Source: Dimorphilus gyrociliatus (lineage: Eukaryota > Animalia > Annelida). Taken from it: a stretch of 39,404 bases of DNA. The position numbers were made by a program, and so were the translations under genes. The stretch spans positions 93,385 through 132,788 of the forward strand of contig CAJFCJ010000061.1 of assembly GCA_904063045.1 (NCBI GenBank), written 5' to 3'. Positions within the stretch are counted from its first letter, which is position 1. Every line of letters begins with the position of its first letter. Below are positions 1 through 36,743 of this stretch, piece after piece. The notes beneath the pieces were generated by a model that worked only from the letters and a program-made list of their open reading frames with translations, was not told the DNA's origin and made no database searches.

Positions 1-3000
1 AATTTCATTGCAGACAAACTTATAAGTCATTAATACAATAAGACTATGCGATTGTTTTAATGATAGAACTATCTCTTCAAAATTATCATTTGATCTCTCA
101 TTATAGATTGATCTTTAGAAAAAAATGAATAAAATATAAAAATGGCATTATAATTTTCAAATCAAATATGCATATATACATACACAAGGATTTCTGATTC
201 TTCCAATTCTTCTTGTATCATTGTTGGAGTTACTTTATCAATGGTGTTTGTAGTTTCAAAATCATCTGAACAGTAAAGAATAGCCAGATTATTCCTAATG
301 GATGACTTCATTTTCTCAAGATCTCTTATTGAACTTTGGAGCTGAGAATCAAAGTCTTCACTATTTTCAGGCGGCAACATATCTGGAATGAAAGATATAT
401 AAATCATAATGATTCAATGATCAACTCATCATAATGATAGATTAATTGTTTTACTTTGAATTTGATTTAAGGATAATGTATGGAAATAATTGTAACACTG
501 CATGAATGGTACTTTAAAAGTTAAGGCCCTTTTGATTTTTGAAGACGGTAGCAGAGAGGGATTTGGTTGTCTAAGATAAACACATTCACTGCAAGGTAGG
601 TAGTAGTCATATTTTACCCCAACAAAAGATTCTGCAATTAAGTTTTCAAACACCTCATGAATAACAAATAACATATTTTCTGGTTGTGGTCCTCTGACTT
701 CAACTTGAACAGTTGAATTACTAAATTGAAAAATTATCAGTATTTTAGTGAAAGATTACAAAACTTTTTTGTTACAAACTCCTTTCTTCTAATAAATCCT
801 CTGTGTATATTCTTTTTTAAAAATGATCCATCCTTCCAAAATTTACCTTCATCACTGTATTGTTGGAGTCTCACCTGAGCTCTATTAAAGAGTCCAGATG
901 GAAGATAATAAAAAAAATAAGTCATTTTTGTTTGAAAATCTTGCTCAGTTAGAATATCTCCTTCCCAAATATTCTATTATTAATATTAACATTCAGAATT
1001 AGACAAATAAGAGTATTAAAAAAAATTGCTACTCACTTGAAAATCAATTGATGGAAGAAGACAGGGAATTAAATTTGCTGATTCTGATTTTAGAGGAAAT
1101 GATAGGTCAAATTCCTCAGTTAGTCTTAATAGCCAATTATGTAAATTTGAAGGATAAATGTGCTCTGGCCATACTTTATTGATATTATGATGTAATAATT
1201 TACCATTCTTGAATATGGAAAATTATTTCAGAGTTCAATCAAAGGCTATTAGTTTCACTCAAAAAAATCAGTCAAACTTACTTTTACTGAATTCTCATGA
1301 ACAGAAATCACACAGGACAAAACATCTACAATCCATTGAGGATTAATAATTACTTTATTCTTCAAATATTCATTTTCAAAATATTGTATTGTTCCCAAAT
1401 CATGAAACAAATGAATTACTTGAAGCACCTAAAAAAAAATAAGCAAGTGAAGCTAAAAGAAATAGATGATGGAGAGAGTATCACCTCATCTTTGTTACTA
1501 AGTCCAAACAGTCCTCCTAAATCTATTACTTCTTTTAATGAAAGAAGATTTGTAAAAGTTCTATATCTGTTGTAAAAACAAAACAAAAAACAAATGATAG
1601 AATTAGGTTAAAATTTAAAATTACGAAAAAATAATAAAGTGTGTTTTGATTTACTCAATAATTTTATTTTCAAAGTTCAACCATGTTTTAGGGATCTTTT
1701 CATTCATATATTGTTGTTGTAGAGTAACTTTGACCATGTTATCAACCAAATCATTGATACCCTTTGGTGAGGATATAGAATATGATAGTAAATAATGATA
1801 AATGATGAAATAATTATCCTTACTTGACCTGTCTTTGAAGAAATGTTATGAAAGCCTTTAATTTGAGGATATCTTCTTTGATAATGACGAATAGTTAACT
1901 CAGCTTTGTTAACCTAGAAAAGATGTCGTTGAATCAATTTTAATGGTAAAATGTAAGACTATACAATACTTGATCTATATGAGATCCAACAACAAATATT
2001 GGTGCTTTTGGAGCATGACATTCAATAGAACTCAGCCAAAATTCAAGACCAGCATGTTCATGACCCAATCGTACATTCCATAAGAGAAAATATACTGCTC
2101 TATTTGATAGGAAAAATTGATGAGTATTATAGTAAACAGTTTGACCAGCAAAATCCCAAATTGAATATTCGACTGATTGAACAGACCAGTTTTTTATTGT
2201 AATTCCATCAGTAACTATTGTTTTAATTGAATCTTGATTTTCATCCTCATTTTTCATTGTCATCATCTTTTTTATAAGACTGGTTTTTCCAGCTCCTCCT
2301 AATCCTACTAACATCAATTTACTTCTTCTACATTGAGTTGAACCTTGTGATAATCTTTTCATATATCCCATTGTATCATTTAGACCTTTTTTCACAATTT
2401 CTCTTGGAGGTGTTTTAAGTGCAGGGCAATCATTAATTTTTAGGTTTTTTAAAGGCAAATGACATATTTCAGCACTGATCTCTTCAAGTAAAAGATTAAA
2501 TGATAAATCTAAAGTTTGTAACTTAATTAAATATTTAATGCTATTATCAATAATTTTGAAACTTTGATATTTTAATTCTAAAACAGTTAAGTTTTCACAA
2601 ATTTCATTGTTTGGGCAAAGATTAAAATCTATAGCTGATATTCTGGGTAATTTAAAATATAATCCAGAAGAGAAGTGTTGAAATTCCTCTAATGTCCAAG
2701 CAGAACTATTTTGCAGTGCAGTTTCTTTTATTAAATTTTCTAATATATTTTTATCTAAACCAAAATTTTCCAGGTGTTCCCATTGTTTGTCAGCTTGATG
2801 CCTTACATCATCCGTTAGTATGGATGTATTGATTTTCTTTGGTGTATATCCAAAGGCATTGAATTTAAGTATAATAAGATGGGACAGTTGAAAGATGACT
2901 GAAGGAAATTCTTTAAAAACATTTTGAGATATGATCAACTCTTCTAAATTTATTAATTCACCAAATTCATCAGGAAGGGAATCAATTGGTAGAGAAGATA

Positions 3001-4340
3001 AATTTAAACATTGCAATTGTTTAAAGTCACAAAACATCTGTGGAAATGATTTTAGATCACATTCCGTAATTTGCAAATTGGCAATTGTGGGCGATAATAA
3101 GCTAAATTCTTGGGGAATATTTTCCAAATTAATACCCTGCAACTCTAACTTTACTATTGAGCTGTTAACAAATATTTCTATCTCTTCTTTTCCAACATTT
3201 TCAAACTTTTCATTCAAATGATTATGAAAGTTACAAATTGTAATTCCATTATCTTTGTTCTTGATAAATTTTTCACTTTTTAAGAAATCAATAAAGCATG
3301 TTTTCCATTTTGCAATTAAAGGTTTTGACAATTTGGTTTCATTCATATTATTATTTTCATATTTTAGTCGTAAATATGAAGAATATAATAACAATTGAGC
3401 ATTTTCGCAAGTACAGTATTCCTATTGTGGAGATAAAAGGTTAGCTTTTTCATTAAATTAAACTTTTTTTTATAAAATGAACTCTTACTGCTATTTTATC
3501 AAAGTTTATCCAACTGCAAAGCATTAAAGCTGATATACATTCCAGTTCTGGAATAAATTTTTGTGGTTCATTTGAAGTTTTTATAATGTGAGTAGAATTT
3601 AAATTTCTACAGAAAGCATAGGGTATGAAAGTTTTATTTTCAATTATTTCTGAGAGAAATGTCACAGATGTGTCTCTCAGTGGACACTTCATCAGGAAAC
3701 CAACTTTAACTGGAAAATCTTTCAATGGTTGGTGAAAATATCTTAGAAAATTGGCTTCCAGTTTCCTAAAAAAGTCTGAAGGAAAAAATAAAGGAAACAG
3801 GAAGGTTAACTACAATAATTATCAATTTTTATTATGTGTATACCTCCGTAATAATTTTCATTTCCTTTATGATGTTGAGTAACCAATTCAGAAAATTCTA
3901 TTTTATCCATATTTGGTTTGTGCAACTTCTTAACAACCTCTTGAGGGATTTGTTCAGTATCTAAATATTCCATTAACTCTTCCCAATTAAATTCTCTATT
4001 GTTTGTTTCTTTTGAAAATGAACGGAATAGTTATAATAGAACAAAAAGAAGAAGAAGAAGTGGAAGAGGAGGAAGAGGAGGAAAAAAGAAAAAATTGCAT
4101 CTTACCTATCCTGATATTTTCATAATTCTTTTTTAATAATAGTAAAGTCAATGATTGTAAGTTTATCCATTTATATTTCTGTTTAAGCCAACAGTGACTG
4201 ATTTTCAACATTTCTAATCTATGAGAAATGTCACAAATTGTAGCAATAGTTGGCTTCATACTTTTATCATCTGTTTCTGCCATAATTTGAAATTTTTGTC
4301 CAATTTTAATTTTATCACGTGATAATTTATAATTGTCTTT
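1..4340 (-). CDS. ROCO-family protein, LRR-Roc-COR-TIR-like part (multi-exon, 3' end beyond window edge)
   Basis: Large exon 1970-3420 has LRRs and Roc GTPase motifs: G1 GLGGAGKTS, G2 TDGI, G3 WDFAGQ, G4 GSHID. Downstream exons splice in frame at GT-AG sites: 1913-1824 (YPQIKGFHNISSKTG), 1761-1655 (YMNEKIPKTWL), COR motifs FHDLGTIQYF..KNKVIINPQWIVDV, LTEEFDLSF..LIPCLLP and YLPSGLFNRAQVRL, a CxxC segment, then a TIR-like segment at <1-390. Upstream exons 4340-4106, about 4011-3845 and about 3775-3490 also join in frame. Confidence 0.9.
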
Positions 4341-7893: not shown

Positions 7894-8504
7894 NNNNNNN
7901 NNNNNNNNNNNNNNNNNNNNNNNNNNNNNNNNNNNNNNNNNNNNNNNNNNNNNNNNNNNNNNNNNNNNNNNNNNNNNNNNNNNNNNNNNNNNNNNNNNNN
8001 NNNNNNNNNNNNNNNNNNNNNNNNNNNNNNNNNNNNNNNNNNNNNNNNNNNNNNNNNNNNNNNNNNNNNNNNNNNNNNNNNNNNNNNNNNNNNNNNNNNN
8101 NNNNNNNNNNNNNNNNNNNNNNNNNNNNNNNNNNNNNNNNNNNNNNNNNNNNNNNNNNNNNNNNNNNNNNNNNNNNNNNNNNNNNNNNNNNNNNNNNNNN
8201 NNNNNNNNNNNNNNNNNNNNNNNNNNNNNNNNNNNNNNNNNNNNNNNNNNNNNNNNNNNNNNNNNNNNNNNNNNNNNNNNNNNNNNNNNNNNNNNNNNNN
8301 NNNNNNNNNNNNNNNNNNNNNNNNNNNNNNNNNNNNNNNNNNNNNNNNNNNNNNNNNNNNNNNNNNNNNNNNNNNNNNNNNNNNNNNNNNNNNNNNNNNN
8401 NNNNNNNNNNNNNNNNNNNNNNNNNNNNNNNNNNNNNNNNNNNNNNNNNNNNNNNNNNNNNNNNNNNNNNNNNNNNNNNNNNNNNNNNNNNNNNNNNNNN
8501 NNNN
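7894..8504. other. Assembly gap (run of N)
   Basis: 611 consecutive N characters. Confidence 1.
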
Positions 8505-9432
8505 TCGACCCAAATATCTCAATTTCGCATATAGTTATACCATTACCAGGATGTGGAATAGATTCTGTCTTGAATAGAGCTAGGTATCTACCAATTGTAT
8601 ATTTAGGACAACGTCTAGTCATGTAATAAGTAGCATCATTTATTGTATTACATAATATTTCCGGTTGCCAGGGAGGATTTGTAAATTGATTGTTTGATAT
8701 TATTATCTTTACACGACTTAGACGGACAACAGGATCTATTCTATTCACCAATGAAACAGCATATATTTCACTCTTTATTTCCAAGTCTATAGCCCACCAA
8801 CTTGGAACAATTGAACCTGTCCATGAACAGTGTGGAGCCTCCCATTTAGAGAAACTTTGCCCATCATTGGCACTATATTTAGTTTCGCCTGGTGATAATA
8901 TATTGAATTTATTCCTGTCAATATCTCGCATTGTCCATATTTCAATCTCGCATATAATTAATTTCTTATTGATTAATTCAAGTTTAACGGCTGCCAATTT
9001 TGAATATTGCGGTCCATTCAAACAATCAACAGTTAGTGATTGCATTGACCCAACTGAACCTCGATTGCACAGAGTAAAAGAGTTGATATTATTAGGGTCA
9101 GTATCATTGATACTAGTGAAAAATAAAACATTTGACATTGAATGACCTCTGGTATTTAAAATTCTGATTGTCCTTATAAAATAGCTGTTTGAAAATACAA
9201 CCATCCACCATTCATTTTCCATAGGGTTAATAGTAGAGCTAAAGCATACTGCTTGATTAAAACTTCCATCCAGTGCCAATTGTTTCCTTTTCAGGTTGCC
9301 ATCTTCACTAGATGAATAACAAACTTGATTTAAAGCGATGTTAACAGTTTGATGTGTATCAGTTGACAAAGTAGAACCAATGTTGATTTTTAGCAGGAAA
9401 AGGATAAAGATTAAATTTGACTTTAGAATCAT
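8505..9432 (-). CDS. Secreted protein with two tandem F-type lectin (FTP/F5-8C-like) domains; 3' end lost in the gap
   Basis: Signal peptide MILKSNLIFILFLLKINIG. Domain 1: NIALNQ..YSSS, ALDG, EWWMVVF, ICEIEIW. Domain 2: ANDG, HCSWT, SWWAIDL, NRIDPVVRL, GRYLAL, ICEIEIFG. No intron seen. Confidence 0.85.
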
Positions 9433-13533: not shown

Positions 13534-16074
13534 GGGGGTGACAGAAAACGTCCACAATTGGCAGAAACATCCACAGATGGACAGAAAACATCCACAAATG
13601 AAGAGTAAATGTGCACATAGTATTAAAAAAATAATTAAATAAGAAAAGAGACGATGAAATGAATTAATATATTTTTCTTAATTGATTAAATACTAATGAT
13701 CTGAGAAAATGAAAACTATGAAATTGCAAGTAAAAAAGTTTATTTAAGAACATAATTTTTCAAATGACTTGAACATTTTTCATATTTTTAATACTGTTGA
13801 ATTAATACTATATTTAATAATATAAAGCAGAACACATCTCAACAAGTTAACTTGCTGTGATGTCACCAACTTTAAAGTTTTCCCAAATGGAAAACAGTTC
13901 CTTTTGAATTTCTGTGTAGACTTTTTTTGCATTCTCAATATCTTCTTCTCACTTAATAATTTTTCATATACAGAAATTAACTCAGCCTCTCTCTTTAGTT
14001 CATCAATAATTGTGTAAAATGATGAGTTTATTCCCATGTTTTTATTGAGTCTATTATGGAATCCTTCCAAGTCATTATTTGTGTGGATTGATTGGTTAAA
14101 CACAGACCAAGTTTCTGGAGGCCAAAAGCTATTTTTTATCCAATTATCCTCCACATATTCTAATAAATCTCCAAGCTTATTTCTTTCAGCCAGCTCACTT
14201 TTTATTTTGTAGAATTGGTTTGCAATCAAAGAATGAGGGAGGTAGGGCAAAGCCATAATCATTTTCATTGATTGCCATTCTCCTACTCTCTTTTTAAATT
14301 CTGGGCTGTAACCCAGATCCTAAAAGTAGTATAATAGACTTAGATTAAATTTTTACATTTATTAGTATTATTTCTAACCTGAATTTTTCTAAAAATGCCT
14401 TGTGACCAATGAAAAGAACAACCAACCATTGTAACATCTGGCCATGTATCTCTGATACTTTTCCAAATGGCCTTCTCATAGTCCAAAACAATTTTTGAAC
14501 AGAGATGTCACCAGTTAATTCATTTACAGCCTAAATACACAAACTATCATTGATTTAAGTATTTAAAAATATCACTTACCTTGAAAAGTAATTTATAAGC
14601 TTTTTTCTTTTTTGAAGTTAAGAATGAAAAAAGCAATGGCACCTGCTTCAACTCTTCATTTTTCCTTAAGAATCCATGGAATGAGAACATTTGGAGAAAT
14701 GGATCCTTGGCAATTTTAAAAGTACCATCCACATACCATATTTTAGCCCTACACAAAAGATTTAACTGATGGTCAGTTGCAAATACTAGTATTCTTTGAT
14801 TGTTTAAATAAATATTTTTCTTTAGAAATCCCAATTGTATAAAAGTCAAATCAAGTTGAAAGTTGACATCATCAGGCTCAGCTGGTTTATTTTTGGCTAC
14901 TTCTTTGCAGTTGTGTAAATTCCCATATGGATATTTTAAAAGAGTTTTCTTCTGCAATCCTTTTTCCAGATGATTTATTATCACTAAGGCACTTCTCTCT
15001 GATATCTTTTCTAATTATAATCTGCTTTTCTACATTTTTCAAAGGTGAATGATTGTGTTTCATTTTACCAATTACAAAATCACTTCCTTTTTGGTTAATA
15101 CTTGCAGAACACTTTCTATTTTTGTTACAAACTGAGCAAGTCCAAATTGTAGCTGTTTTTCTTTTCATTTTTATGTTAAAAGTATATCCTTTGTGGATGA
15201 GAAGATCTTTTCCTTTTTGATTGCCATTTGGTAAAATTTTGAAATGTAAATCATCAGTGCAATAATCTCTTTGACTAGTATGACTTTCAAATGAATTCTC
15301 TTGAAAATCTTGAACTTCTGTAGTTGATGTATCCATTGTGGTTACTTCAATTTCATTGTTGTGTGTAATTTCATTGTCATTAATCACATTTCCAGTTTCC
15401 AATGGACAGTCAACAAAACTCTCTGAACTACTAAAAGAGAAAGACAACCTCAGCTCTTCTGTAGGTTCACTGAATTTCTTTTCTTTTCTTATTATGAATT
15501 CTTGTTAGCAACACAATACAGTTTCTGTTTGATATTTGATAACACATCAAACATAATGGCGAAGTGCTGGTTGCATCAGAAAAAAAAAATTAATAACTGA
15601 CAAAATCAAACTTTGGATATTTCATACCTTGAAAACACTTAATATGACAGTTTTTAAATCAAAGACAACATATGCCTTTGATTTGGTTTTCAATGAATTC
15701 ATCTTGACAAATATAACATGTATTATCCATGTTTTTAAACTTGGGATAGTTTTCTAGAAAACTTGGAAAATAATTTATATTAACAAAATACCAGAAATTA
15801 GCAATTATCTATAGTATATACATTATTCAATAAGAGAAATCAAACAGTCACTTTTGTAAATATTTTGTTTTTTTGTGTGCATTTTCTGTCCCTTTATGGA
15901 CATTTTCTGTCTTTTAAGTTTAACTATCAAAGTCACCTTTTTTTGAAAATATAACTAATTATGCATATAAAATTAACACTTTTCTATAAAGTTTTCTAAA
16001 GAAAAAGGTTTTTTTTTTGTTTTTTCACCTATTTTTTCATTGTTTTAATTTTGTGGACGTTTTCTGTCTGAACC
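13534..16074 (-). mobile_element. Complete Mutator-like element (MULE) with TIRs and 9-bp TSD
   Basis: Left end gggggtgacagaaaacgtccacaa; right end ttgtggacgttttctgtctgaacc; subterminal cagaaaac(a/g)tccac repeats at both ends; flanking direct repeat CAACAAAGT at 13525-13533 and 16075-16083. Confidence 0.92.
13780..15447 (-). pseudogene. MULE transposase with FLYWCH-type zinc finger, two introns and frameshifts
   Basis: FLYWCH-like HKGYTF..IWTC..KC..HNH; catalytic YVDGTFK; VLDYE..GCSFHWSQ (exon about 14530-14378); WSVFNQSIHTNNDLEGFHNRL. Frameshifts near 14960, 14493 and the C-terminus; introns near 14580-14531 and 14377-14340. Confidence 0.88.
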
Positions 16075-16759: not shown

Positions 16760-18602
16760 TTGTTTCTTCATAAATATCAATTTCAGTTATACATTGACTG
16801 CCCAAAGATTCAATACTTATAGATTTAATGTTATCTTGCTGTATTTCTTTACAGATTGTTTGTTCAAAGAGAAAATTTCCATGAATTTGAACAGATTTTA
16901 TAGTATCATGCACATCTTTAAGGTTTAGAATATAACCTCCAGTTTGTTGAGAAAGGTGAAGAGCTTTTTAAAATGGAAATATTTCAATTTTTTCTTAATT
17001 CAAAAAAAGAAAAAAAACTTTACATGTTAAACAAAAAGTATGCAAATTAATTTGACTTTCAAATATTATTTCACAAAAATCATTAGATCCTTGAACTATT
17101 TTTTGATTTGAATCTTCTGTATAGTAGACGCTATCAGTTAAAAAATTTTTCATATCTATCCCATTATGTATTATTGATGATATATCATTTAATTTAATTC
17201 TACCAGTTTTCCCCATAGTTGGAATCTTTGTACCATAAATAAACAATTCAGATATTTCAAAGTAGTACATAGCCCTATTGTTACTTTCATCAATAATGTT
17301 TATTAATAAATACTGTCCAGTTAAGTTAGGTGGACATTTGAATATATGAGCTTTTCCAGTATGGAATGTAGATTGCAGTTTGTTATAGTCAGTAACACAA
17401 TATTTATTTAAACTTGAATTTATTGTTTGGGGAAAGTCATTGACTGATATAAATATATTCGCAAATTGAGATGAATAATCTGTTTATAAGAGAAAATAGT
17501 TTTTTATATATATATATAAATTGACCTTGACCTTTAATAACCTGTTTTTGTTCCAACAACAATTAGAAAATTAATTGAGTAGGTATCTTTTAAATCTAAA
17601 CGCAAAAATGGATTCTTGATTAAATCCTCTTTGGATCTTGATTGAAAATTTGTATAAAAAGCATTGTCTATTAAATGAGAAATGAGAAAATTAGTTTGCC
17701 TTGGTTTCCCACCAAAATATTCAAAATTGGTAAAATTAATAAGCTGGTAATCTGTATGAAATATTAAAATATTTAATAATTTCTAAATTGATTAATTGAT
17801 TTTTAACATTTTGTCAGAAATATTAATCAAATAATTTAAATCTTTAGGATAAAGAAAAAATTCAATGCTTAGATTTGAAATATATATTTCTAACAATTTG
17901 TCAAAAAATCTTTAATTTTTTTTTTTTTTTACTTCTCTCTCTAATAAAATCTCCATAGATTAAAATATGACAAATTTGTAAATACTTTTTATTTATTAGT
18001 CTTCTTATTGTAACAAATGATCCAATAGAATTAGGATTACAAGGAAATTCATCGTAACTCGACAAATTTGTCGATGTAGCAAGTTTTACTATACCACTTA
18101 CAAAATAGCACAATGTACTATTTATGCTATTTGGCATATCGCCAACAAATATATCCAACTTTTTTTGCATATTGCCTAAAATAATTTATAAATATGCAAA
18201 TGAAGCAAGATTTTAAAAAAAACCTAAAAATACCATAAGAATCTCCTCTATTTAGAATCGATACCGTCGTTACTAGATAAATTTTTTCAATATCAATAGA
18301 AATCCATGGTTCAACTTCGTATGCCGCATTCGATGAACATTGAAAAGGAGTTGATAGGTGAAGGAACTCAATTATATCATCAATTGCTTTACTTGCATAT
18401 AAATTAGTATCAACACCATTATTCAAGTTATAAATATGCAAAGAACTCTGATAAGCATGTTTATTTCTTGCTAAATTGAAATTTGATTCCGACTCTGATA
18501 GTTTTCCATTTAGAAAAACTTAAAATAAGGGGAGAAAATGATACTTTTGATAGAAAATGAGATTATCTTACCTAGAAGAGTTATAAATGTTAATGTCTTC
18601 AT
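16760..18602 (-). CDS. Secreted or membrane protein with two to three F-type-lectin/discoidin-like domains (3' end unresolved)
   Basis: Exon 18602-18572 (MKTLTFITLL) splices to NFNLARNKHAYQSS..ASKAID..QCSS..EPWISIDI..ILNRGDSY, then CPNSIGSFVTI-like and LQICHILIYG. Second domain: HLIDN..NPFLRLDL..CPPNLTGQYLLI..FEISELFIYG. A third, more divergent repeat follows. All junctions are GT-AG. Confidence 0.8.
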
Positions 18603-19284
18603 TACAATTTCAAATCTGTCTAGTAAATGCTTCACTCCTCACCAATTATAAATATTTTCCTAAGTCAATAGGTATTTATTGACTCTATTGATAGAGAAAA
18701 ATAATATTTTTTAACAAATTTGTAATCACGTGATTGAAAACAAATACTTGGATTTTTATTGCCCAAAAATTGTATTAAAAAAAAAACAACAAAGTTTGGG
18801 CTTAGAATAAAAACTTTCCACTCTTTTTTGAAAGTTTAAAACATCAATTAACAAATAATTTATGATCAGACAAAGCAATTCAACATAAAAATATTTCTAT
18901 ATTAATGATTACAAGTATAGAGCAATTGTTTACAATCTTTTTAAGCACTTGATTGTAAATCTTAAGATTATTGAAAAACTATAATATTGATTTCTCTCTC
19001 TTTCTCACTCATGCCCTCTTTCTAGGAAAGTAAATTTCCTTTAAAATCACATAAATTTCATTGTCTGCATATATTAAGCCAGAGAATTTCCAGGAAATAT
19101 TTACATGTCATGCATTTCTACTCAGCAGAAAATCATTTCTTTTTTCAATACAGTAATCTCAAACAGGTCAGTTGTTTAAAAATATTCATATAGATGTTAT
19201 ATTAACATTTTTCCTTTCTATAAGAGTTGGAAGGGAAGAAATTTTTGAGAAGACTTCTATAATGTTTAAGTATTTATGTTAGGC

Positions 19285-19304
19285 TACAGATGGCGCCATC
19301 TGTA
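19285..19304. promoter_or_regulatory. Perfect 20-bp palindrome TACAGATGGCGCCATCTGTA (CTCF-core-like AGATGGCGC on both strands)
   Basis: Sequence is self-complementary; resemblance to the CTCF core comes from the known motif, binding not shown. Confidence 0.35.
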
Positions 19305-19518
19305 TATGATTTAATTTTTTTCATAATCATGCCATAGTTAATAATAAGCTGTTTAGCTGTAGAGCTACAGCGAAATTGGTGTGTTTGAAAGAGACTATTC
19401 AAGTGTTAAATATTTTTAATCAATAATAAATTAATCCAATCCGAGGTAAGATACACAGCAAAACTGTCATGCTAGAGTATTTTACTTTTTAATGGGAAGT
19501 TGTGTTGGAAAACACAAA

Positions 19519-20799
19519 TTAAGAATTCCCAATCAATATTCTATTCAGAGGGAAGAAATTTGCCATTTCAGAATTATTATCCCACAAGTTTAGTTTAAGA
19601 ATTCCACGAAAGTTGAGAGGGGAACATTCCAGTTGGAATGAAAGAGGACAACACAAATCTTTTCTTAATATACTTTCAAAACTGCAAAAGTTCTTACCAA
19701 TATTTGTATTGCAGTCAACTTCTAAAGAAGCTTGAATTCCATTATCTCTCTTCCATTCTTTATCATTTTTTATATAAACTTTGACAGAATTTTTTGTACA
19801 TTCTATCTTCTCCTTAGATCTATTCAACTAAGTGTTGAAACAATGAAAAAAGATAAGAGAATTAGATGAATAACTAAAAATGAAAAAAAAAACCTTTTCT
19901 TTAAAGGAATCTTCAGAAAGGAAAAGAAATATTTTCAAACAGCAATTTTCATTATTTTTCTGTGTTAAAGTACAAAAGTAATAGAGAATGAACTTTTCTT
20001 TAAAACAGAGAAAATGATTGGAAATAACTGTCTCCATAATCGTTAAGTCTTGATTTTTAAATGAAACTGAAATGCTGTTGGCTTCTATTAACTCACTTCT
20101 TTGAAGAGAAAAAATAAAACCTCTTTGAATGAAAGGTAGATAAATATTTCCAACCAGTTCTGATTTAATAGTCAAATTGACATTTTCAATTTTTTCTTCT
20201 GGTATAGCATAATTCTTGGTGAAAATTTTGTGTTTTAAATTCTCCACCTTATCCTTAAAACAAGTGACTACTAGTTGACAATTTACACCTTTATTATTTA
20301 CCAGTTTTGCAGTTGCGCAAATGAATAAGACAGAGAGTGGAGATAACGGTTTGTGTGTTATCTGTAATTTTTGATTTTCTCCAACTTTTAAAAACAAGTA
20401 ATCATTTTCAATATCAGAGTAACATTCCTGATTAATTTCACACTGTTTAAATGGTAATTTGATCCAGCCAATTGGAGATATAGCTCTGTCATTAAAACTT
20501 GAAATTTCTAACCAATCATCATTAATAGATATATTTATTCTGTATTTATCTTCTTCAATAGAATCTAAAAGCATAATTTCCAATCCACAATCAGTGAAAT
20601 ATTCCAAAACTCCTTGATGTAGAGTAACATCCATAGAAATTGATTTTTCATCCCAATAACATTTCGTATCTGGTTTAATCAGTGAAAAACTTCTCAATTT
20701 CTTTGTAGATTCCAATTCTATTACATTGTCATGAGAAAAAATTCTATATTTGTTGTTAGTCAAAAAAACTCTATACTTACCAGTGACAGTGAAAGACAT
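19519..20799 (-). CDS. ZU5-UPA-like protein (UNC5C-like/PIDD-like module, no death domain seen)
   Basis: Two exons, about 20799-19894 and 19827-19519, joined in phase 0. QGVLEYFTDCGLEIML and RAISPIGWI resemble ZU5 GGxL..GVxLxIP and LSPVV; KNFCSFESILRKDLCCPLSFQLE..GILKLNL resembles the UNC5 UPA EIPFxxIW..CxFxLE segment. The 5' exon structure is uncertain. Confidence 0.55.
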
Positions 20800-21338
20800 A
20801 GTCTTTCATATGATAACTATTGTAATGGTGGTGACTTTCAAATCTTTTGTAATCAGTCATATGTATTTATGGCCAGAGTTGATAGCTTATCTGTAAAAAT
20901 TGAAAATTGTTATTGATATTTATTATATATTAGTTTTATTGAATGAATTTCAATATGGAAAGTAGAAACCTGGGTTAGACAATCCTTAGTTTACTTTCCT
21001 TCTCTCTCTTTCTCTACCTCTATCTCATACACACACAGGCTTTCCCCAAAACTCAAGATAAAAATTTTATTATCTTATCTCAATTATTTGATTGTAAAAT
21101 GTTATTTTTTATTTCTTTTGTAATTGACAACAACTGAAAATAACAATTAGTGTCCTCAATAACTAAATATTGACATAACACTAACACAGATTAAGGGCAA
21201 AAATAAACTGACAATTTGAGATTATTTTCCTAAAAGTTTAAAGGGAAATAAGGACAGAGATTTTAAAAAAATTCTAAATATTATAAATGAGAATATAGGG
21301 CTAATTAGTCCTAATCTTATCTCCTTAATTTTACAGAG

Positions 21339-23023
21339 AACGAATTTGTTTTCTGTTGGTGAGCCGTAGGAGAATGTTACAAAATTTAAAATATCTTTCA
21401 AATACGGATGTTTTCTTATTTATTTCGTGCCGGAATGAGTTGATAGAAGAGAAGAACATTTTATCAATTTACCTAAATCAAGCCTATTCATTTAAAGAAA
21501 ATGTTCAGTAGATTTTATTGATTTCATATTTTTTTGAATAATCATTTAAAAAAAAACCTACAGGAAAATTACGCTTCGTCTGACGATAAATTTGAATTTA
21601 AATTCAGAATGAAAGAAGAATATTTTCAATTGGATCAACAACACGGAATAAGAATATCACTGACAGGAAAAGATGTTAAAGAAATCAAATCTTTTGCCAC
21701 TTTTGAAGAGATATTTAAGACTAATCCAGGTAAGATTTTGCCAATTTTTTGTTTTACAAGAGTAGTAATCAACATTGTTTTATCATAAGAAACAAATATG
21801 ATTGATCCTTTTAAATTTGAAATTGGCAACAAATATCCTCCTCTTCATATGACTATTTCAATTGGTAAATTTTCTGAAGATTGTATTTTCGATACATTAC
21901 TCAAGTATAGAGATTCGGATTCTATTAAATCTTCTAGAAGAAGACAGGAAGATAAAGCTACAATTAAAGAAGCTTTCTATTATTTTTGGAGAAGATGTAC
22001 TAGTTTTTACTTTTAATTTGATTATATAGAAGGATTAGTTGAAACTTTCTTATTTTCTATCCATAGCACTCACAGGACACATATGTATGCCATTTCGACA
22101 AACTGCTACAACAGTAAACTTTGATGATGATAGGCCTGTAAGATCAGTTGAAAACATTTTTTTTATAATTTACAATAATTCATTATAATTTTCTTTTTAA
22201 GGGAAAGAAGAAACAAGTTTTTGATACAACTCAATCAAATGTTTCAATCATTTTAAACAGCACTAAAAACAGAAACTACCATGAAATTGATATTGAAAAT
22301 TTGAAAAGATTAATGAAAATGCTCAATTATAGATATGAAATATGGGAGAATTTGTCTTTGGAAGAGTTCAATACAAAAATAGATTCCCTACAAATAGATT
22401 CATTAAAGTCACTCACATTCTATGTAATGAGCCACGGCAACTATCAAGGTTTTGTTTTAAAGGACATGAATAGCTATATAAAATATACAGATTTTCTTTT
22501 TACTATTACAAAAAAAAAGAAATTGAAAAATTTAGATATTCCAATGATATTCTTTTTTCAAACTTGCCGTTCAGCAACAGGTAACAAACACACTTTTTGA
22601 AAAGAGACAAACAATACTTTTAAATACATTTTCACATTAAAAAATAGATGATGCTTCAAAAGTAAGACCTTTGCAGGAGTTTAGTCACAGTTTACATCCA
22701 TTTACGACTAATAATAAAACTGACGAAGAGAACATTTTTGAAGGATATGCATCAGTTAAATGTAAACAGAATCTCTTTCAAATTGTTGTTTTTATATTAT
22801 ATCATCTATTTTTGTAGATTTTCCATCATTTCGGACACCGTATGGAACATATTATATACGTGCAATAATCATCTGTATTATTCTGTTCCGGCATAAAGAC
22901 AATCTGGAAGAGATAATGGAAAAGGTTAAAAAATGCATGTTTGGAGTATGTAACTATCAATTGCCAGAATATTTTAGCACCTTGAAGAAAGATGTTTATC
23001 TTTATGTTTGTAATAATAGCTGA
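21339..23023 (+). CDS. Caspase-family (peptidase C14) protein with an N-terminal UPA-like domain
   Basis: Exons about 21339-21502, 21564-21729, 21790-about 22000, about 22068-22136, 22202-22580, 22629-about 22760 and 22818-23023. p20: IILN..NRNYHEIDIENL, MSHG (His) and FQTCR (Cys). p10: IFEGYASV, FPSFRTPYGTYYI, QLPEYFSTLKKDVYL, then TGA at 23021-23023. Start codon uncertain. Confidence 0.85.
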
Positions 23024-23052
23024 GAGAGAGAGTGTGTGTGTGTGTGTGTGTG
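23024..23052. repeat. (GA)n(GT)n microsatellite
   Basis: gagagagagtgtgtgtgtgtgtgtgtgtg directly after the caspase stop codon. Confidence 0.9.
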
Positions 23053-23094
23053 TTTTTACTATGTTGTATTGTAAATGTAGGAATTTCTGCTTCT

Positions 23095-23285
23095 TCAAAA
23101 CAGTAATTGTCCTTTTCAATCATTTACCAATTTGTTAAAGTACTCAAACCAATAAAACCCCAAAAAGTCTTATCTATATTATCAATAAATGTAATTTCTT
23201 TAGAAATTAATCAACAAATTATGAGTATTCTGACAAAGAGTATGTATTGAGTAAAATGAGTTTCTAGCTCTAAACAAGCAAGGTC
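23095..23285 (+). repeat. Diverged dispersed repeat (second copy at about 38095-38292)
   Basis: Shared caatcattta.caa.tt.t.aaagtactc ... aaatgtaattt ... gtattgagtaaa(a)tgagtttctag.tctaaacaag.aag. Confidence 0.75.
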
Positions 23286-23436
23286 TACACACTCCCATAA
23301 AATATTTATCAGGCTGAACCACGTCCCTTCCAAATCGGAAAAGAACTTGAACTTTTTAAGTCTATTGGATTCGATCACTCAAGCAGAAAAAGAAGGCAAA
23401 CTTTATGTTATGCTCCTCATATGCCTATAGAACAAG

Positions 23437-24858: not shown

Positions 24859-27336
24859 TCATCTACTAATTGTTAGACAATGAAATTGCTGTAACAAACC
24901 TTCTAAATATCTATTTTTTGGATTATCTCTACTTAATGTAGAAGTATAGCTCAATATGTTTAGAGTATATGAAGAATTTAAAAGTGCTTCATATATATTC
25001 TCCAAATAAACAATATCTATGGATGAATTCTTATCAATATGTACTGTTTGTAATTGAGAAAACTCTTTTAGATAATATCCAAGTTTTTTGTATACTTCTT
25101 CAGTCAGGCCACAGTTTGTAAAATGAATATCCTTCAAACTTTCATTTGATGAATGAATAAGTCCTTGTAGAATATGAATAATTCCATCTTTTATCTTATC
25201 GTTCCCCTCCAAATTGATTATTTCTATTTTAGAACAAGTCCTTAGTAAATTGCCTAATGTTACGCAATTTTCGTTGTTTAGGTTGCATCGTTGAAGGTAT
25301 ATACTCTTTAAATTTGTTGAAGATAGGATGTGAAAAATTTCATTTAAACCATCAGTTATAAATGTATTTTTACTTAGATTGATTGTTTCAATTCTAGTAC
25401 AGATTTTCAGCAATTTCTTTATGCTCTTACATTCTACTTCGCATAGATCACAATCTTTAAAATTGAGAAACTTTAAAGTGTTTGCTGATTGGGCAAGTCC
25501 ATCACAAATATAACATAATCCAATGCTCATAGATCTATTTGATTCTAAATTGATTGACTCTAAATTAGAACAATCTTTAAAAAGATCTCCTAAATTCTTA
25601 CAATCCTCTGGATTCAAATCATAAGATTTGAAGTTTAAATTCTTCAGGCTACTTGTTAAATGATTGAGCTGTTTATAGATGTTGATTAATTTAGTTTTTG
25701 TTGTGTTGTGCCCCACCTCTATGTCAATGGTTTCTAGTTTAGAACAACCTTGAAAAAAGCTCTTAATCAATTGACATTTATTTTCATGGATACAACCCAA
25801 AGACATTTGGATATTTTTTAAAGTATTTGAAGATTGGACCAGATTTTCAATGTTAGAAATTTCAGTAAAATATTTCCTGAGAGATCCATTCCAATACTTT
25901 AGACTGTACAAATGGACTGTTTCTAATTTAGAACAAGTTTTCAATAAAATTCCAATTGCTTTAAATTCTGTTTCTCTACCAGGCCTTATATCGAAATGAA
26001 TGTTCTTTAAACTGTTAGATTGAAGCATGAGTTCATTACAAACATTTTCAATATCTTGATATACTGCTTCTAGATGAATGCTTTCTATTTTTGTGCAGTT
26101 TTTCAGAAAATTTGGCAAACATTTCCATTTTGTATCATTTCTTACTTGAGGTACAGTACAAGTTATCTGTTTTAAACTGTTTTTTGAAGAAATGAGTGCT
26201 TTACAAAAGTTCATATCAAATGCATGACAATTTATATTTATTGCCTCTATGTTGGAGCAATTTTCCAATAGATTTTCAATAATCTCAGACTCAAAGACAA
26301 CACACCGAGAAATATGTATATACCTAAGAGCTTTTGAGGAGCCAATAAGACGTTCAAAAATATTTTCAATGTAATGTTCTTCCAACTTATTATTTCCTTC
26401 AATATGAAAAGTGTGAATTTTTGAACAACATTTTAAAGCATTACCAATCTGTTGACAATTTTCTTCATTAAAATTGCAGTTCTTAATATACAATTTTATC
26501 ATTTTATGAGATGAATAAAATATTTCTTCCAAAATTTTCAAGTTTTGTTTGTTAATATTTTTAAATGACAGTTCAATTATTTGAAATGAGTGTTTCTTAT
26601 CTTTCTCATCAATTTCTATCCATCTTTTTAGGAGCATTTCATCCAAGTTTTTTGAATCATTGTTAATATCATTTTCAAAAGAATAATCAATTTGGATACT
26701 TTCCTTAATTTGCATATCAAGCCTTTTGATATTATTTGGATTAGCTATCATTTTAGTATTCTCTTTTAATTGAGAATTGAAATATTTTTCCCTTTTTTCA
26801 ACTAGTTCTTTAAATTTGCTTTTAACAATGTTAAACTCGTCCTTAACCTTTTTAATTGCTCTATTTTCATATTCCTCAATTTGTTTTAGTTTTTCAAGAT
26901 TGTGTCTCCTTTCTTCATTAAAGAAATTATCTATAATTTCTTTTGTCTTTTCATATTTAACCATTGAAATAACCTTGCAATTTTCATGTTTTTCTTCAAA
27001 GCACATAACACAGATATTTTCTTCTGAATGTGTTTGACAATAAAGTAATGTTTCCATTTCATGATCTTTACATAATTTCCTCTGCAATAAAGATTTTTCT
27101 AATAAATTTGTAGTTAAATATTTGGGTAGCATATCAATCTTCTCTATTGGCTGTCCGTCAGCTTGTTCACATTCTTGGCATTTAAGCTTGCCATTGTCAA
27201 TTGCAAATTGCCTCAAACATTCCAAACAGAATATATGTTTACAAGGAAGTATTCTTGGGTCATTTTCTAACCAAGATTTAGAACAAATACCACAAATTAG
27301 CTCCTTTTTGCTGATAAAATAGCCTTTGGTAGCCAT
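24859..27336 (-). CDS. Intronless RING-B-box-coiled-coil (TRIM-like) protein with C-terminal RI-type leucine-rich repeats, 825 aa
   Basis: RING CGIC..PRILPCKHIFCLEC..KCQEC; B-box CKDH..LYCQTH..ICVMC..KHENC; E/K-rich coiled coil; repeated CxxLGxLLKxCSxLExIxL / xICxxLxxSxxxLKxI units; uninterrupted ATG-to-stop ORF. Confidence 0.9.
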   Translation of the reverse strand: MATKGYFISKKELICGICSKSWLENDPRILPCKHIFCLECLRQFAIDNGKLKCQECEQADGQPIEKIDMLPKYLTTNLLEKSLLQRKLCKDHEMETLLYCQTHSEENICVMCFEEKHENCKVISMVKYEKTKEIIDNFFNEERRHNLEKLKQIEEYENRAIKKVKDEFNIVKSKFKELVEKREKYFNSQLKENTKMIANPNNIKRLDMQIKESIQIDYSFENDINNDSKNLDEMLLKRWIEIDEKDKKHSFQIIELSFKNINKQNLKILEEIFYSSHKMIKLYIKNCNFNEENCQQIGNALKCCSKIHTFHIEGNNKLEEHYIENIFERLIGSSKALRYIHISRCVVFESEIIENLLENCSNIEAININCHAFDMNFCKALISSKNSLKQITCTVPQVRNDTKWKCLPNFLKNCTKIESIHLEAVYQDIENVCNELMLQSNSLKNIHFDIRPGRETEFKAIGILLKTCSKLETVHLYSLKYWNGSLRKYFTEISNIENLVQSSNTLKNIQMSLGCIHENKCQLIKSFFQGCSKLETIDIEVGHNTTKTKLINIYKQLNHLTSSLKNLNFKSYDLNPEDCKNLGDLFKDCSNLESINLESNRSMSIGLCYICDGLAQSANTLKFLNFKDCDLCEVECKSIKKLLKICTRIETINLSKNTFITDGLNEIFHILSSTNLKSIYLQRCNLNNENCVTLGNLLRTCSKIEIINLEGNDKIKDGIIHILQGLIHSSNESLKDIHFTNCGLTEEVYKKLGYYLKEFSQLQTVHIDKNSSIDIVYLENIYEALLNSSYTLNILSYTSTLSRDNPKNRYLEGLLQQFHCLTISR

Positions 27337-33835: not shown

Positions 33836-36743
33836 ATGAATGAAAGAAAAAGATTAAAATTTCTTTTACCAATATTTTTCTTAAAAGTTTTCCTTTTCAT
33901 TTACAATCTCCAATTAACAGCTTCTGCAGGATGCTTCAGTACTTTTGTTGAGTATAATGGTTATTGTTATAAAAGTACATACTCAAAAGGCGATTGGTAT
34001 TCCTCAGAAAGGATTTGTCATGTCTATGGTGCAGAAATGATTAGTATCCTAAGTGAAAAGGAAGAATATTTTGTTGAAAATCGTTTACTAGTTAGAAATT
34101 GTTGAAAATCAACTTTCAATAATTTATATAAATCATTTTTTCTTGTTTTTTTTCCAGTAGAATACTAACCGAGGAGACATATTCTATATAGGTTTAAACA
34201 AACTAAACAGAAGAGAATATCTGTCAGTATAGTTTATATAAAAATTTTAATTCAATTTTCTCAATTCTGTTTTAATTTAACAGATGGTCTGATGGTTCAC
34301 CTGTTAATTATACAGGTACACTTATCAACTCTAATGATTCTTTGTGCGTTGCTTATAGTCCAAGATGTAGGTAATTAATTTAAAAAAGAAAACAAAACTA
34401 AAACAAAATTGACTTTTTTTTTTTGCACAGCTACAACCAAATGGAAAAACATTAATTGTGGAATGGAAGAAAAACGCATTTGTAAAATGAAGAAAGGTGA
34501 TACGCGACCCACTGGTAGACCAACTCCAGCAACTTCTCATCCGCCGGGCCATTGTCCAAAAGGTTGGCTGGAATCATCCCGAAAATGTTTTTTGGTAGTT
34601 TTCTTGGATAAAGTCAATGGGCTAAGATATTATGAAGCAAGAAGAAGTTGTAGGTCATTAAACTTAATGTCAGATTTAGCTACAATTGAAAGTGCAGAAG
34701 AGACTTCATTAATTGTTTCACGCGCAGTAGCTGTTGGTGATACAGATGGATTATGGTTTGGTTTATTCAGAAGAAATTATTTGTCTGATTGGCTATGGTA
34801 TGATAATTCTCCAATTAATCTTGACAGATACAGTAACTGGAATAGAAAGCCAGAAAAACAGGCTTGTTTCATTAACTAGTTACTCAATTACAATACTTGA
34901 GAATATTTTTCTACAGACAAGGGCTTACATATCACTTTTTGATAATTATTTTGCGAGAGTAGGTCAATGGGTAGGACATTCATATGGCAGAATGGGCTAT
35001 GTATGTAGTATGAAAAAAAGTTGGTATTTATGATTTACAAAAGAAATCAGTAAAATATGTTTTTTTCTATTATTAGGTGACATTGAATTGATGTCAACAA
35101 CTCCCCAAAAGAAAACTGTTTGTCAAAGGGGAGAATTTCTTGGAGATGGTTGTTATACTATACAAAATGAAAAGAAAACTTGGAATGAAGCTTTAACATC
35201 TTGTAAAAATTATGTATAATTTTTAAATTCTGCATTTTCAAAAGTAAAAAGTCTTTACAACTTCTTTTCTTCCAAAGAATATGAATTTGGCTTCTATTCA
35301 TACTGTATCATTGACTGAAAGACTAAAAGTTTATATTAGAAACACAGAAAAATATTACTGGATTGGATTGAATAAGTTTAATTATACCGAGCCATTTTTA
35401 TGGAGTGATAATTCTGTATATATCTATAGAAATTGGCATCGAGTTTCTCGTGACAATAGATATAACAATTGTGTTGCAATTTCACCAAATGCCAAATGGA
35501 GAGCTTTTAATTGTAGCACACAGTTGGAAAGTATTTGCAAAAAATCATTTGGTGTTTTACCTACAGTTCCTCCTCAGATTGATGGAACATGCCCTGATCC
35601 AAATCAGCCTTATTGGCTCAAATATGGCAAATATTGCTATTTATTTCCCTATAATGAGGTAAGTTCTTATGAAGAAGCATTAGAGACGTGTAGTAGAATA
35701 AGCAGTGGATTAGCTGTTCCAGTCACCATTCATGATATGTCAGAACAATTTTTGATAACTAGACGAATCCAGCATTTAGAGAAAGTCTGGATAGGCTTGA
35801 CACGTGAATCTTCTAATCAACCATACCGTTGGGTTGATAACACTTCTGTAACATTTGAATTTTGGAGAAAGTATGATGTAGGTCGTGGGGATTGCGTTGC
35901 TCTCACTAATGATAAAAATGTAAGGATGCCGGGCCGATGGATAAAACAACCATGTTCACTGCCAGATAACAAAAAAATTGGCTTTGCATGTAAAACTTTG
36001 ACAATTCCATACCCAACCACTCCTATCCCAGGGAGAGGAAAATGTCCTCCAAAATTTTCAAATGAAGACAATTGGGAAATATTTGGTGAAAAATGCTTAC
36101 TTTTTGTAAAAAGTCATTTTGCAGATTACAAACTAGCTACAAGAATATGTAGAAGAGTTAATGGCACCTTGGCAGAGATAAAAACATATGATGAAAATTG
36201 CTTTATTGAACAACAAGCCAAAAAACATTTACCATTTTACATAAAAGGTTTATGGATTGGTCTAAGAAGAAGAAAAAATGGTCAATATTTGTGGGAAACT
36301 GGTGATAAATTCCATTTTGACTATTTTTACTATAAGGATGACAGAAAAGGAAATTGCACTGTATTGAATACTACTGTACATGGTTATTGGAAAAGTCACA
36401 GATGCTCTAAAAATCATTTTCCTTTTGTATGTCAAACAGATTTGTTAAAAGGTATATTACTTTTCAAATGTCACTTATTTTCTCTTTTTTTAATTAGTAT
36501 GTTATTTTTTTGGTAGATTCACCCAAATTGCCAACTACCACTAAGAAACCAACTAGTAGTAAAGTAGGGCTAATTATTGGCATAACAATTGGTATTTGTT
36601 CTCTAATTGCAATATTTGGTGGTTTAATTTACAAATGGAAAACTTCTGCAAGAGTTCAAACAAACACAAATCCAGGTGGAGATAACAATAGTTTTCCAAA
36701 GAAAATTCAAATGTCAAAATGTCAAAATGAAGAATCCTGTTGA
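33836..36743 (+). CDS. Type I membrane protein with five C-type-lectin-like domains (mannose-receptor-like architecture)
   Basis: Signal peptide; five CTLDs (YNGYCYK..FYIGLN..WSDG..WKNINC; CPKGW..LWFGL; YWIGLN..WRAFNC; VWIGL..WIKQPC; LWIGL..WKSHRC..FVCQ); Pro/Thr linkers; TM GLIIGITIGICSLIAIFGGLIY; short tail ending at TGA 36741-36743. Confidence 0.92.

Follow-up and report, generated by a model that had tools for sequence, protein, structure and literature searches.

The 39,404-nucleotide stretch of contig CAJFCJ010000061.1 from the annelid Dimorphilus gyrociliatus, here called the window, carries two divergently oriented genes between positions 19519 and 23023: a caspase gene on the plus strand and, on the minus strand, a gene with no recognisable family. 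The guanine-plus-cytosine (GC) content of the window is 25-33% and its introns are short. The start codons of the two genes (20799 and 21374) are 575 base pairs (bp) apart and their stop codons occupy 19519-21 and 23021-23, an arrangement that had been predicted from the DNA letters alone with 5' coding ends about 0.5 kb apart. Both genes are transcribed and spliced, as seen from GT..AG joints in contigs of runs X2 and X3. Transcript evidence consists of these contigs, with no raw reads; X1 contributes unspliced DNA contigs. On both strands the X2 and X3 contigs skip GT..AG stretches of 56-79 nucleotides (nt) exactly where introns had been predicted, and they were therefore treated as transcript assemblies, the runs not being recorded as RNA. 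The stretch occurs without differences in runs filed under two organism labels, probably an older and a newer name for one species. New at this locus are the caspase, which is lineage-specific and has an uncharacterised prodomain, and its orphan neighbour.

The plus-strand gene is, as judged from its sequence, a caspase zymogen that keeps the catalytic histidine and cysteine. Spliced transcript contigs give a protein of 423 residues (ATG at 21374, stop TGA), and all of its introns are bounded by GT..AG and visible as contig joints in X2/X3. Sequence searches were run exon by exon, plus slices, for both genes. The exon at 22202-22579 matches Pfam Peptidase_C14 (PF00656) with 38.4 bits against a cut-off of 21.4 (E 1.5e-9), and in PDB it finds 20 caspase chains with E<=0.01. 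The catalytic His lies in SHG (codon 22433-35) and the Cys in QTCRS (codon 22565-67), with a spacing of 44 residues. In the PDB alignments Arg, SHG and QTC are in register with caspase-1 and with an ancestral caspase-3/6/7 (THG/SHG and QAC in these), and the Arg and Gln of the plus-strand protein align with residues of the caspase S1 pocket. The small-subunit exon gives a weak C14 match (13 bits, E 0.085, profile positions 179-233) and no PDB caspase match; SFR and GTYYIRAI motifs are recognisable in it by eye. The prodomain of about 200 residues is beta-rich by eye and no exon of it matches any Pfam family, death-fold families (CARD, DED, DD) included. Directly 3' of the caspase stop lies a (GA)n(GT)n microsatellite (window 23024-23300). 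The stretch after it has a summed DNA-run contig depth of 46,000-48,000 compared with about 89 in the flanks (~500x), which points to a high-copy repeat.

The catalytic exon contains a 71-nt stretch that behaves as an optional intron. The X2 contig removes these 71 nt between the catalytic His and Cys, which shifts the frame and leads to a stop (TGA, 22649-51). The X3 contig retains them, yet an additional A follows 22509 (A10) and shifts the frame in the same way. In the window and in the DNA contigs the run consists of nine A. The frame-shifted transcripts could reflect regulated unproductive splicing, could encode a truncated product made of the prodomain and half of p20, or could be a contig artefact. 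Set beside the C14A caspases (caspase-1, -3/6/7), the plus-strand protein agrees in scoring above the C14 gathering score and in holding Arg, His and Gln-x-Cys in register. It differs in having QTCRS instead of QACRG, a highly divergent small subunit, no CARD, DED or DD prodomain family, and an optional frame-shifting intron between His and Cys.

The minus-strand gene is predicted to encode a lineage-restricted orphan protein. The spliced contigs give 383 residues (ATG at 20799, stop TAA), and its introns of 79, 63 (in frame) and 66 nt are all GT..AG and visible as joints in X2/X3 contigs. An open reading frame (ORF) of 323 codons is improbable by chance at 28% GC, which supports the gene as real. 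Positions 19300-19827 are continuous in X2 record 9 and X3 record 12, and the transcript contig extends without splicing to below 19300. By eye neither this protein nor the caspase has an obvious signal peptide. Internal repeats in the orphan protein are not significant (p 0.17), and tblastn finds no paralogues in the window. The X2 contig of this gene extends for about 2 kb beyond the stop (~17250-19520), over the next minus-strand gene, which starts near 18610 with MKTLTFITLL, a sequence resembling a signal peptide, and has a weak F5/8 type C match at 18127-18441. This extension may represent read-through, or overlapping transcripts or untranslated regions (UTRs), in a compact genome.

Between the two genes lies a gap of at most about 255-307 bp that is free of RNA. 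On the minus side the RNA reaches at least 21011 in X2 and 21063 in X3, the latter in an unspliced piece (record 14, 20872-21063); on the plus side the contig begins at 21319 in X3. X2 has no depth over 21042-21309. The genes qualify as a head-to-head pair: they are divergent, both are transcribed, and the 5' ends of their contigs are less than 1 kb apart. Since the gap is short, a shared promoter region is possible, these being contig 5' ends and not mapped transcription start sites, and we infer that the gap would hold such a promoter. Coordinates are collected in Table 1.

Table 1. Coordinates of the two genes, of features within and between them, and of selected neighbours (window positions).
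Feature	Position	Strand	Basis or remark
Minus-strand gene, exon 1 (5' UTR)	20970..21063	-	joint 20890->20970, 79-nt intron
Minus-strand gene, exon 2; ATG 20799, MSFTVT plus split codon GAA	20781..20890	-	joints 20890/20970, 20717/20781
Minus-strand gene, main coding exon; 274 full codons, beta-rich, no recognisable family	19894..20717	-	contig joints
Minus-strand gene, last coding exon; 102 residues plus TAA	19519..19827	-	joint 19827->19894, 66 nt, phase 0
Minus-strand side of candidate shared module; last 48 residues of main exon, intron, first 55 residues of last exon	19663..20037	-	alignments
Gap between transcripts, candidate bidirectional promoter region	21064..21318	.	RNA-free
Plus-strand gene, exon 1; in-frame TAA 21326-28, ATG 21374, ends SFKEN, then phase-0 intron	21319..21502	+	X3 record 15; joint 21502->21564
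Plus-strand gene, exon 2; block best aligned to last exon of minus-strand gene	21564..21729	+	contig joints
Plus-strand gene, exon 3; prodomain, no family match	21790..21996	+	contig joints
Plus-strand gene, exon 4; linker ...NFDDDRP	22067..22137	+	joints 21996->22067, 22137->22202
Plus-strand gene, exon 5; caspase large-subunit region	22202..22580	+	Peptidase_C14
Optional 71-nt GT..AG intron; holds A9 run 22510-18	22449..22519	+	X2 joint 22445->22517 (cut +3)
Plus-strand gene, exon 6; inter-subunit linker	22648..22761	+	contig joints
Plus-strand gene, exon 7; small-subunit region (..SFRTPYGTYYIRAI..), stop TGA	22818..23023	+	joint 22761->22818
LRR-Roc (ROCO-type) exon	1940-3394		Roc 2.2e-22
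Discoidin (F5/8 type C) ORF, 567 residues	7729-9432		overlaps 17% GC stretch 8001-9000
Two C-type lectin ORFs	34409-36516		1.4e-37 and 6.7e-11

The two genes resemble each other around one intron. A phase-0 intron stands directly after SFKEK in the minus-strand gene (19828-19893) and directly after SFKEN in the plus-strand gene (21503-21563), as had been predicted, and the contig joints place it there in both. The two introns are similar in size (66 and 61 nt). Of the 18 nt that precede each donor, 15 are identical between the genes, a likeness also seen as inverted repeat I5; this level is reached by 8.7e-6 of all exon 18-mer pairs, which amounts to about 1e-4 for 12 donor pairs (post hoc). 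The original prediction had further aligned three blocks of protein sequence, and these fared differently. The exon downstream of the intron, ..DNGIQASL..KNFCSFESILRK in the minus-strand gene and ..QHGIRISL..KSFATFEEIFKT in the plus-strand gene, aligns with a BLASTP E of 0.007, and when anchored at the acceptor gives p 0.0012 with shuffled sequences as the control and p 0.006 with segments of other window proteins as decoys. This block holds, whereas the pairing of FILYYFC..CCLKIFLFLSED with VFLFISC..NILSIYLNQAY does not reach significance (local p 0.38; in the anchored test, p 0.087 with shuffled sequences and p 0.02 with decoys) and that of SFQLE with PFKFE is at chance level (p 0.32). The common phase-0 intron after SFKE(K/N), together with the colinear weak match that follows it, would argue for one ancestral module. 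From these alignments it is plausible, though borderline, that the genes share a module spanning one conserved intron position, and we consider true homology over about 100 residues to be reasonably probable.

Several observations weigh against this interpretation and against an active caspase. Two of the three blocks first aligned are not significant. Exon 1 of the plus-strand gene finds its best match 45 residues further upstream in the minus-strand gene (E 0.019), in a non-colinear position. A profile of the best block (19663-19827 minus, 21564-21728 plus) matches a beta-hairpin of green fluorescent protein (GFP) at E 0.0025; that a chance hairpin scores about as well as the paralogue match shows the level of noise. 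The similarity as a whole lies in the twilight zone and was selected post hoc. As to the enzyme, the intact caspase frame is present in 0 of the 2 transcript assemblies, and the active form may therefore be rare or absent. The genes could, on such grounds, be unrelated neighbours linked by proximity only, in which case the SFKE junction, like the weak alignment, would have arisen by chance in a proteome rich in K, N, I, F, L, S and E and encoded by DNA of 28% GC. BLASTP values of only 0.007-0.019, each from a single comparison, would be in keeping with this, as would the choice of the similarity after a scan of the whole window, the GFP match at the same level, and the failure of tblastn in the window to connect the two genes. 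A chance origin does not sit easily, however, with a donor-anchored identity at p ~1e-4 that is joined by an independent anchored match in the next exon (p 0.001-0.006), nor with matches that are colinear and introns that agree in phase and nearly in size. We regard mere proximity as unlikely.

A different alternative follows from the identity originally given to the shared module. The module had been called a UPA domain, the N-terminal 230 residues of the orphan protein a ZU5 domain, and the plus-strand gene a UPA-caspase. The caspase part of the last name is borne out by the C14 match, whereas its UPA part has no profile or sequence match, and the ZU5 and UPA assignments found no support in Pfam, PDB, large protein collections or the ESM Atlas. 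No exon or slice matched ZU5 (PF00791), UPA (PF17217), FIIND (PF13553) or the death domain in Pfam at E up to 10, HMMER filters restricting these negatives to about E<0.25. No chain of UNC5, ankyrin, PIDD, NLRP1 or CARD8 was found in phmmer and profile searches of PDB. Among 1.84 billion representative proteins searched with HMMER phmmer there was no ZU5 protein and no true relative of the minus-strand gene. A word-index search of 5.8 billion proteins with the minus-gene exon and the caspase exon returned nothing, not even the queries themselves, and an ESM Atlas feature search gave no usable match and no UPA. Some matches were set aside. Outside the caspase large-subunit exon, PDB matches to gp120, a cGAS-like protein, McrC and GFP were rejected as chance, as was the sole HMMER match, to a bacterial LPXTG surface protein (P0001), in which seven near-identical repeats of about 12 bits each inflate the score.

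Structure prediction gave no clearer picture. AlphaFold2 single-sequence models of the main exon of the minus-strand gene and of its first 140 residues had predicted local distance difference test scores (pLDDT) of 32 and 38 and were unusable. Foldseek with the 140-residue model, itself unreliable, gave no match against PDB at E<=0.001, with a template-modelling (TM) score of about 0.2. In the low-confidence models, residues 1-120 of the orphan protein show beta strands and no other secondary structure. The HFS/SFS autoproteolysis motif expected at a ZU5-UPA border is not present; the only HF motif, ..ISNHFLCF.. at residues 233-238 of the main exon, reads HFL and not HFS. The negatives for ZU5 and UPA are limited in power because of the HMMER filters, because a profile would need homologues, of which there are none, and because the putative UPA spans exon junctions. 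The stretch around SFKE (IFLFLSEDSFKEKL / IYLNQAYSFKEN) is one that we take to resemble the UPA of NLRP1, which is a lead and not a test. The papers found describe neither this pair nor any ZU5/UPA-caspase of an annelid. The label of a PIDDosome-like ZU5/UPA module is not established. The predicted lack of a death domain in either gene agrees with the searches, in which no exon matched a death-fold family.

Were the UPA identity correct, the locus would hold a split module of FIIND or PIDD type. The minus-strand gene would encode ZU5(-ZU5)-UPA without an effector and the plus-strand gene a ready-made UPA-caspase, the two coupling by UPA-UPA or ZU5-UPA contact with no death domain. The plus-strand protein would begin close to the site at which a ZU5-UPA-caspase fusion would cleave itself, and alignment A2, as a lead only, puts its initiator Met three residues before the 'NHF' of the minus-strand protein. 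A prodomain without a death-fold family match, and beta strands alone in the (unreliable) models of residues 1-120 of the orphan protein, are what this arrangement would lead one to expect. UPA domains are known to self-associate and to lower the threshold of assembly, and UPA promotes assembly of NLRP1-CT and CARD8-CT (PMC7794386). These points have to be set against the empty family searches, in which neither a Pfam domain of the ZU5, UPA, FIIND or DD kind, nor a PDB chain of the known carriers, nor a ZU5 protein among the 1.84 billion sequences appeared; HFL stands where HFS would be needed, and the fold search, with its unreliable model, was empty. We judge the split module improbable, more so than simple proximity. 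Its most specific form, a naturally split FIIND-type switch in which a stand-alone ZU5(-ZU5)-UPA protein and a pre-cut UPA-caspase are expressed from one bidirectional promoter, is less probable still.

The comparison with NLRP1/CARD8 FIIND and with the ZU5-ZU5-UPA-DD of PIDD1 is therefore one of concept: in each a beta-rich module that could oligomerise precedes an effector, and, if the alignment is right, the plus-strand protein starts about at the FIIND cut site. The annelid pair differs: it has no ZU5, UPA or FIIND sequence match, it lacks an HFS/SFS site, and neither a CARD nor a death domain is present. Its effector is the caspase itself and its halves are separate genes.

The pair stands among other genes of immune type, in which the window is dense; these include a ROCO-like LRR-Roc gene, discoidin-domain genes and C-type lectin genes. 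Convergent to the caspase gene lies an intronless ORF of 825 residues with RING and leucine-rich repeats (RING-LRR; 24859-27336, minus strand). Its sole database relatives, P0002 and P0003 (24-25% identity), come from Logan contig L001 (28% GC), a tandem RING-LRR array with no caspase and no sequence like the minus-strand gene. ORFs with a FLYWCH zinc finger (1.1e-9) and a MULE transposase (0.0028) at 14547-15447 on the minus strand are probably the remnant of a Mutator-like transposon. The stretch at 8001-9000, with 17% GC, has long ORFs on both strands and is probably low-complexity repeat coding.

We propose that the two genes are a real, expressed and lineage-restricted pair, that their common module arose by local inverted partial duplication, and that the orphan protein binds the caspase prodomain; we give this reading a probability of about one in two. 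Both proteins would be cytosolic, and their genes would be transcribed away from each other across the gap of ~250-300 bp. The duplication would be an old one, and it would probably have copied a single ancestral module, now represented by the orphan protein's last ~100-residue region and by the N-terminal ~100 residues of the caspase prodomain. Through this common module the orphan protein would bind to the prodomain of the caspase, serving as platform or decoy. The optional 71-nt intron between His and Cys may then act as a second off-switch, at the level of splicing.

An arrangement of this kind would have a parallel at the CASP1 locus. CASP1 is adjoined by the prodomain-only paralogues CARD16 (COP), CARD17 (INCA) and CARD18 (ICEBERG), which regulate caspase-1. 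There, as proposed here, a caspase lies beside a gene with a partial copy of its prodomain made by local duplication, and the copy could bind that prodomain and modulate caspase activation. The annelid module is, however, not a CARD, its carrier has an additional N-terminal part of about 230 residues, the genes are head-to-head, and the homology is only borderline.

On present evidence the locus comprises an orphan gene and, beside it, a lineage-specific caspase whose catalytic exon includes an optional intron that shifts the frame. If the split switch proved true, UPA-driven assembly and restraint of a caspase by ZU5 would be open to study without autoproteolysis and without a death-fold adaptor. 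Should the module turn out to be UPA, these genes would form a naturally occurring trans counterpart of the NLRP1/CARD8-type switch. If the module is real and mediates binding, whatever its family, the pair would constitute a compact two-gene system for the recruitment or restraint of a caspase without CARD, DED or DD adaptors.

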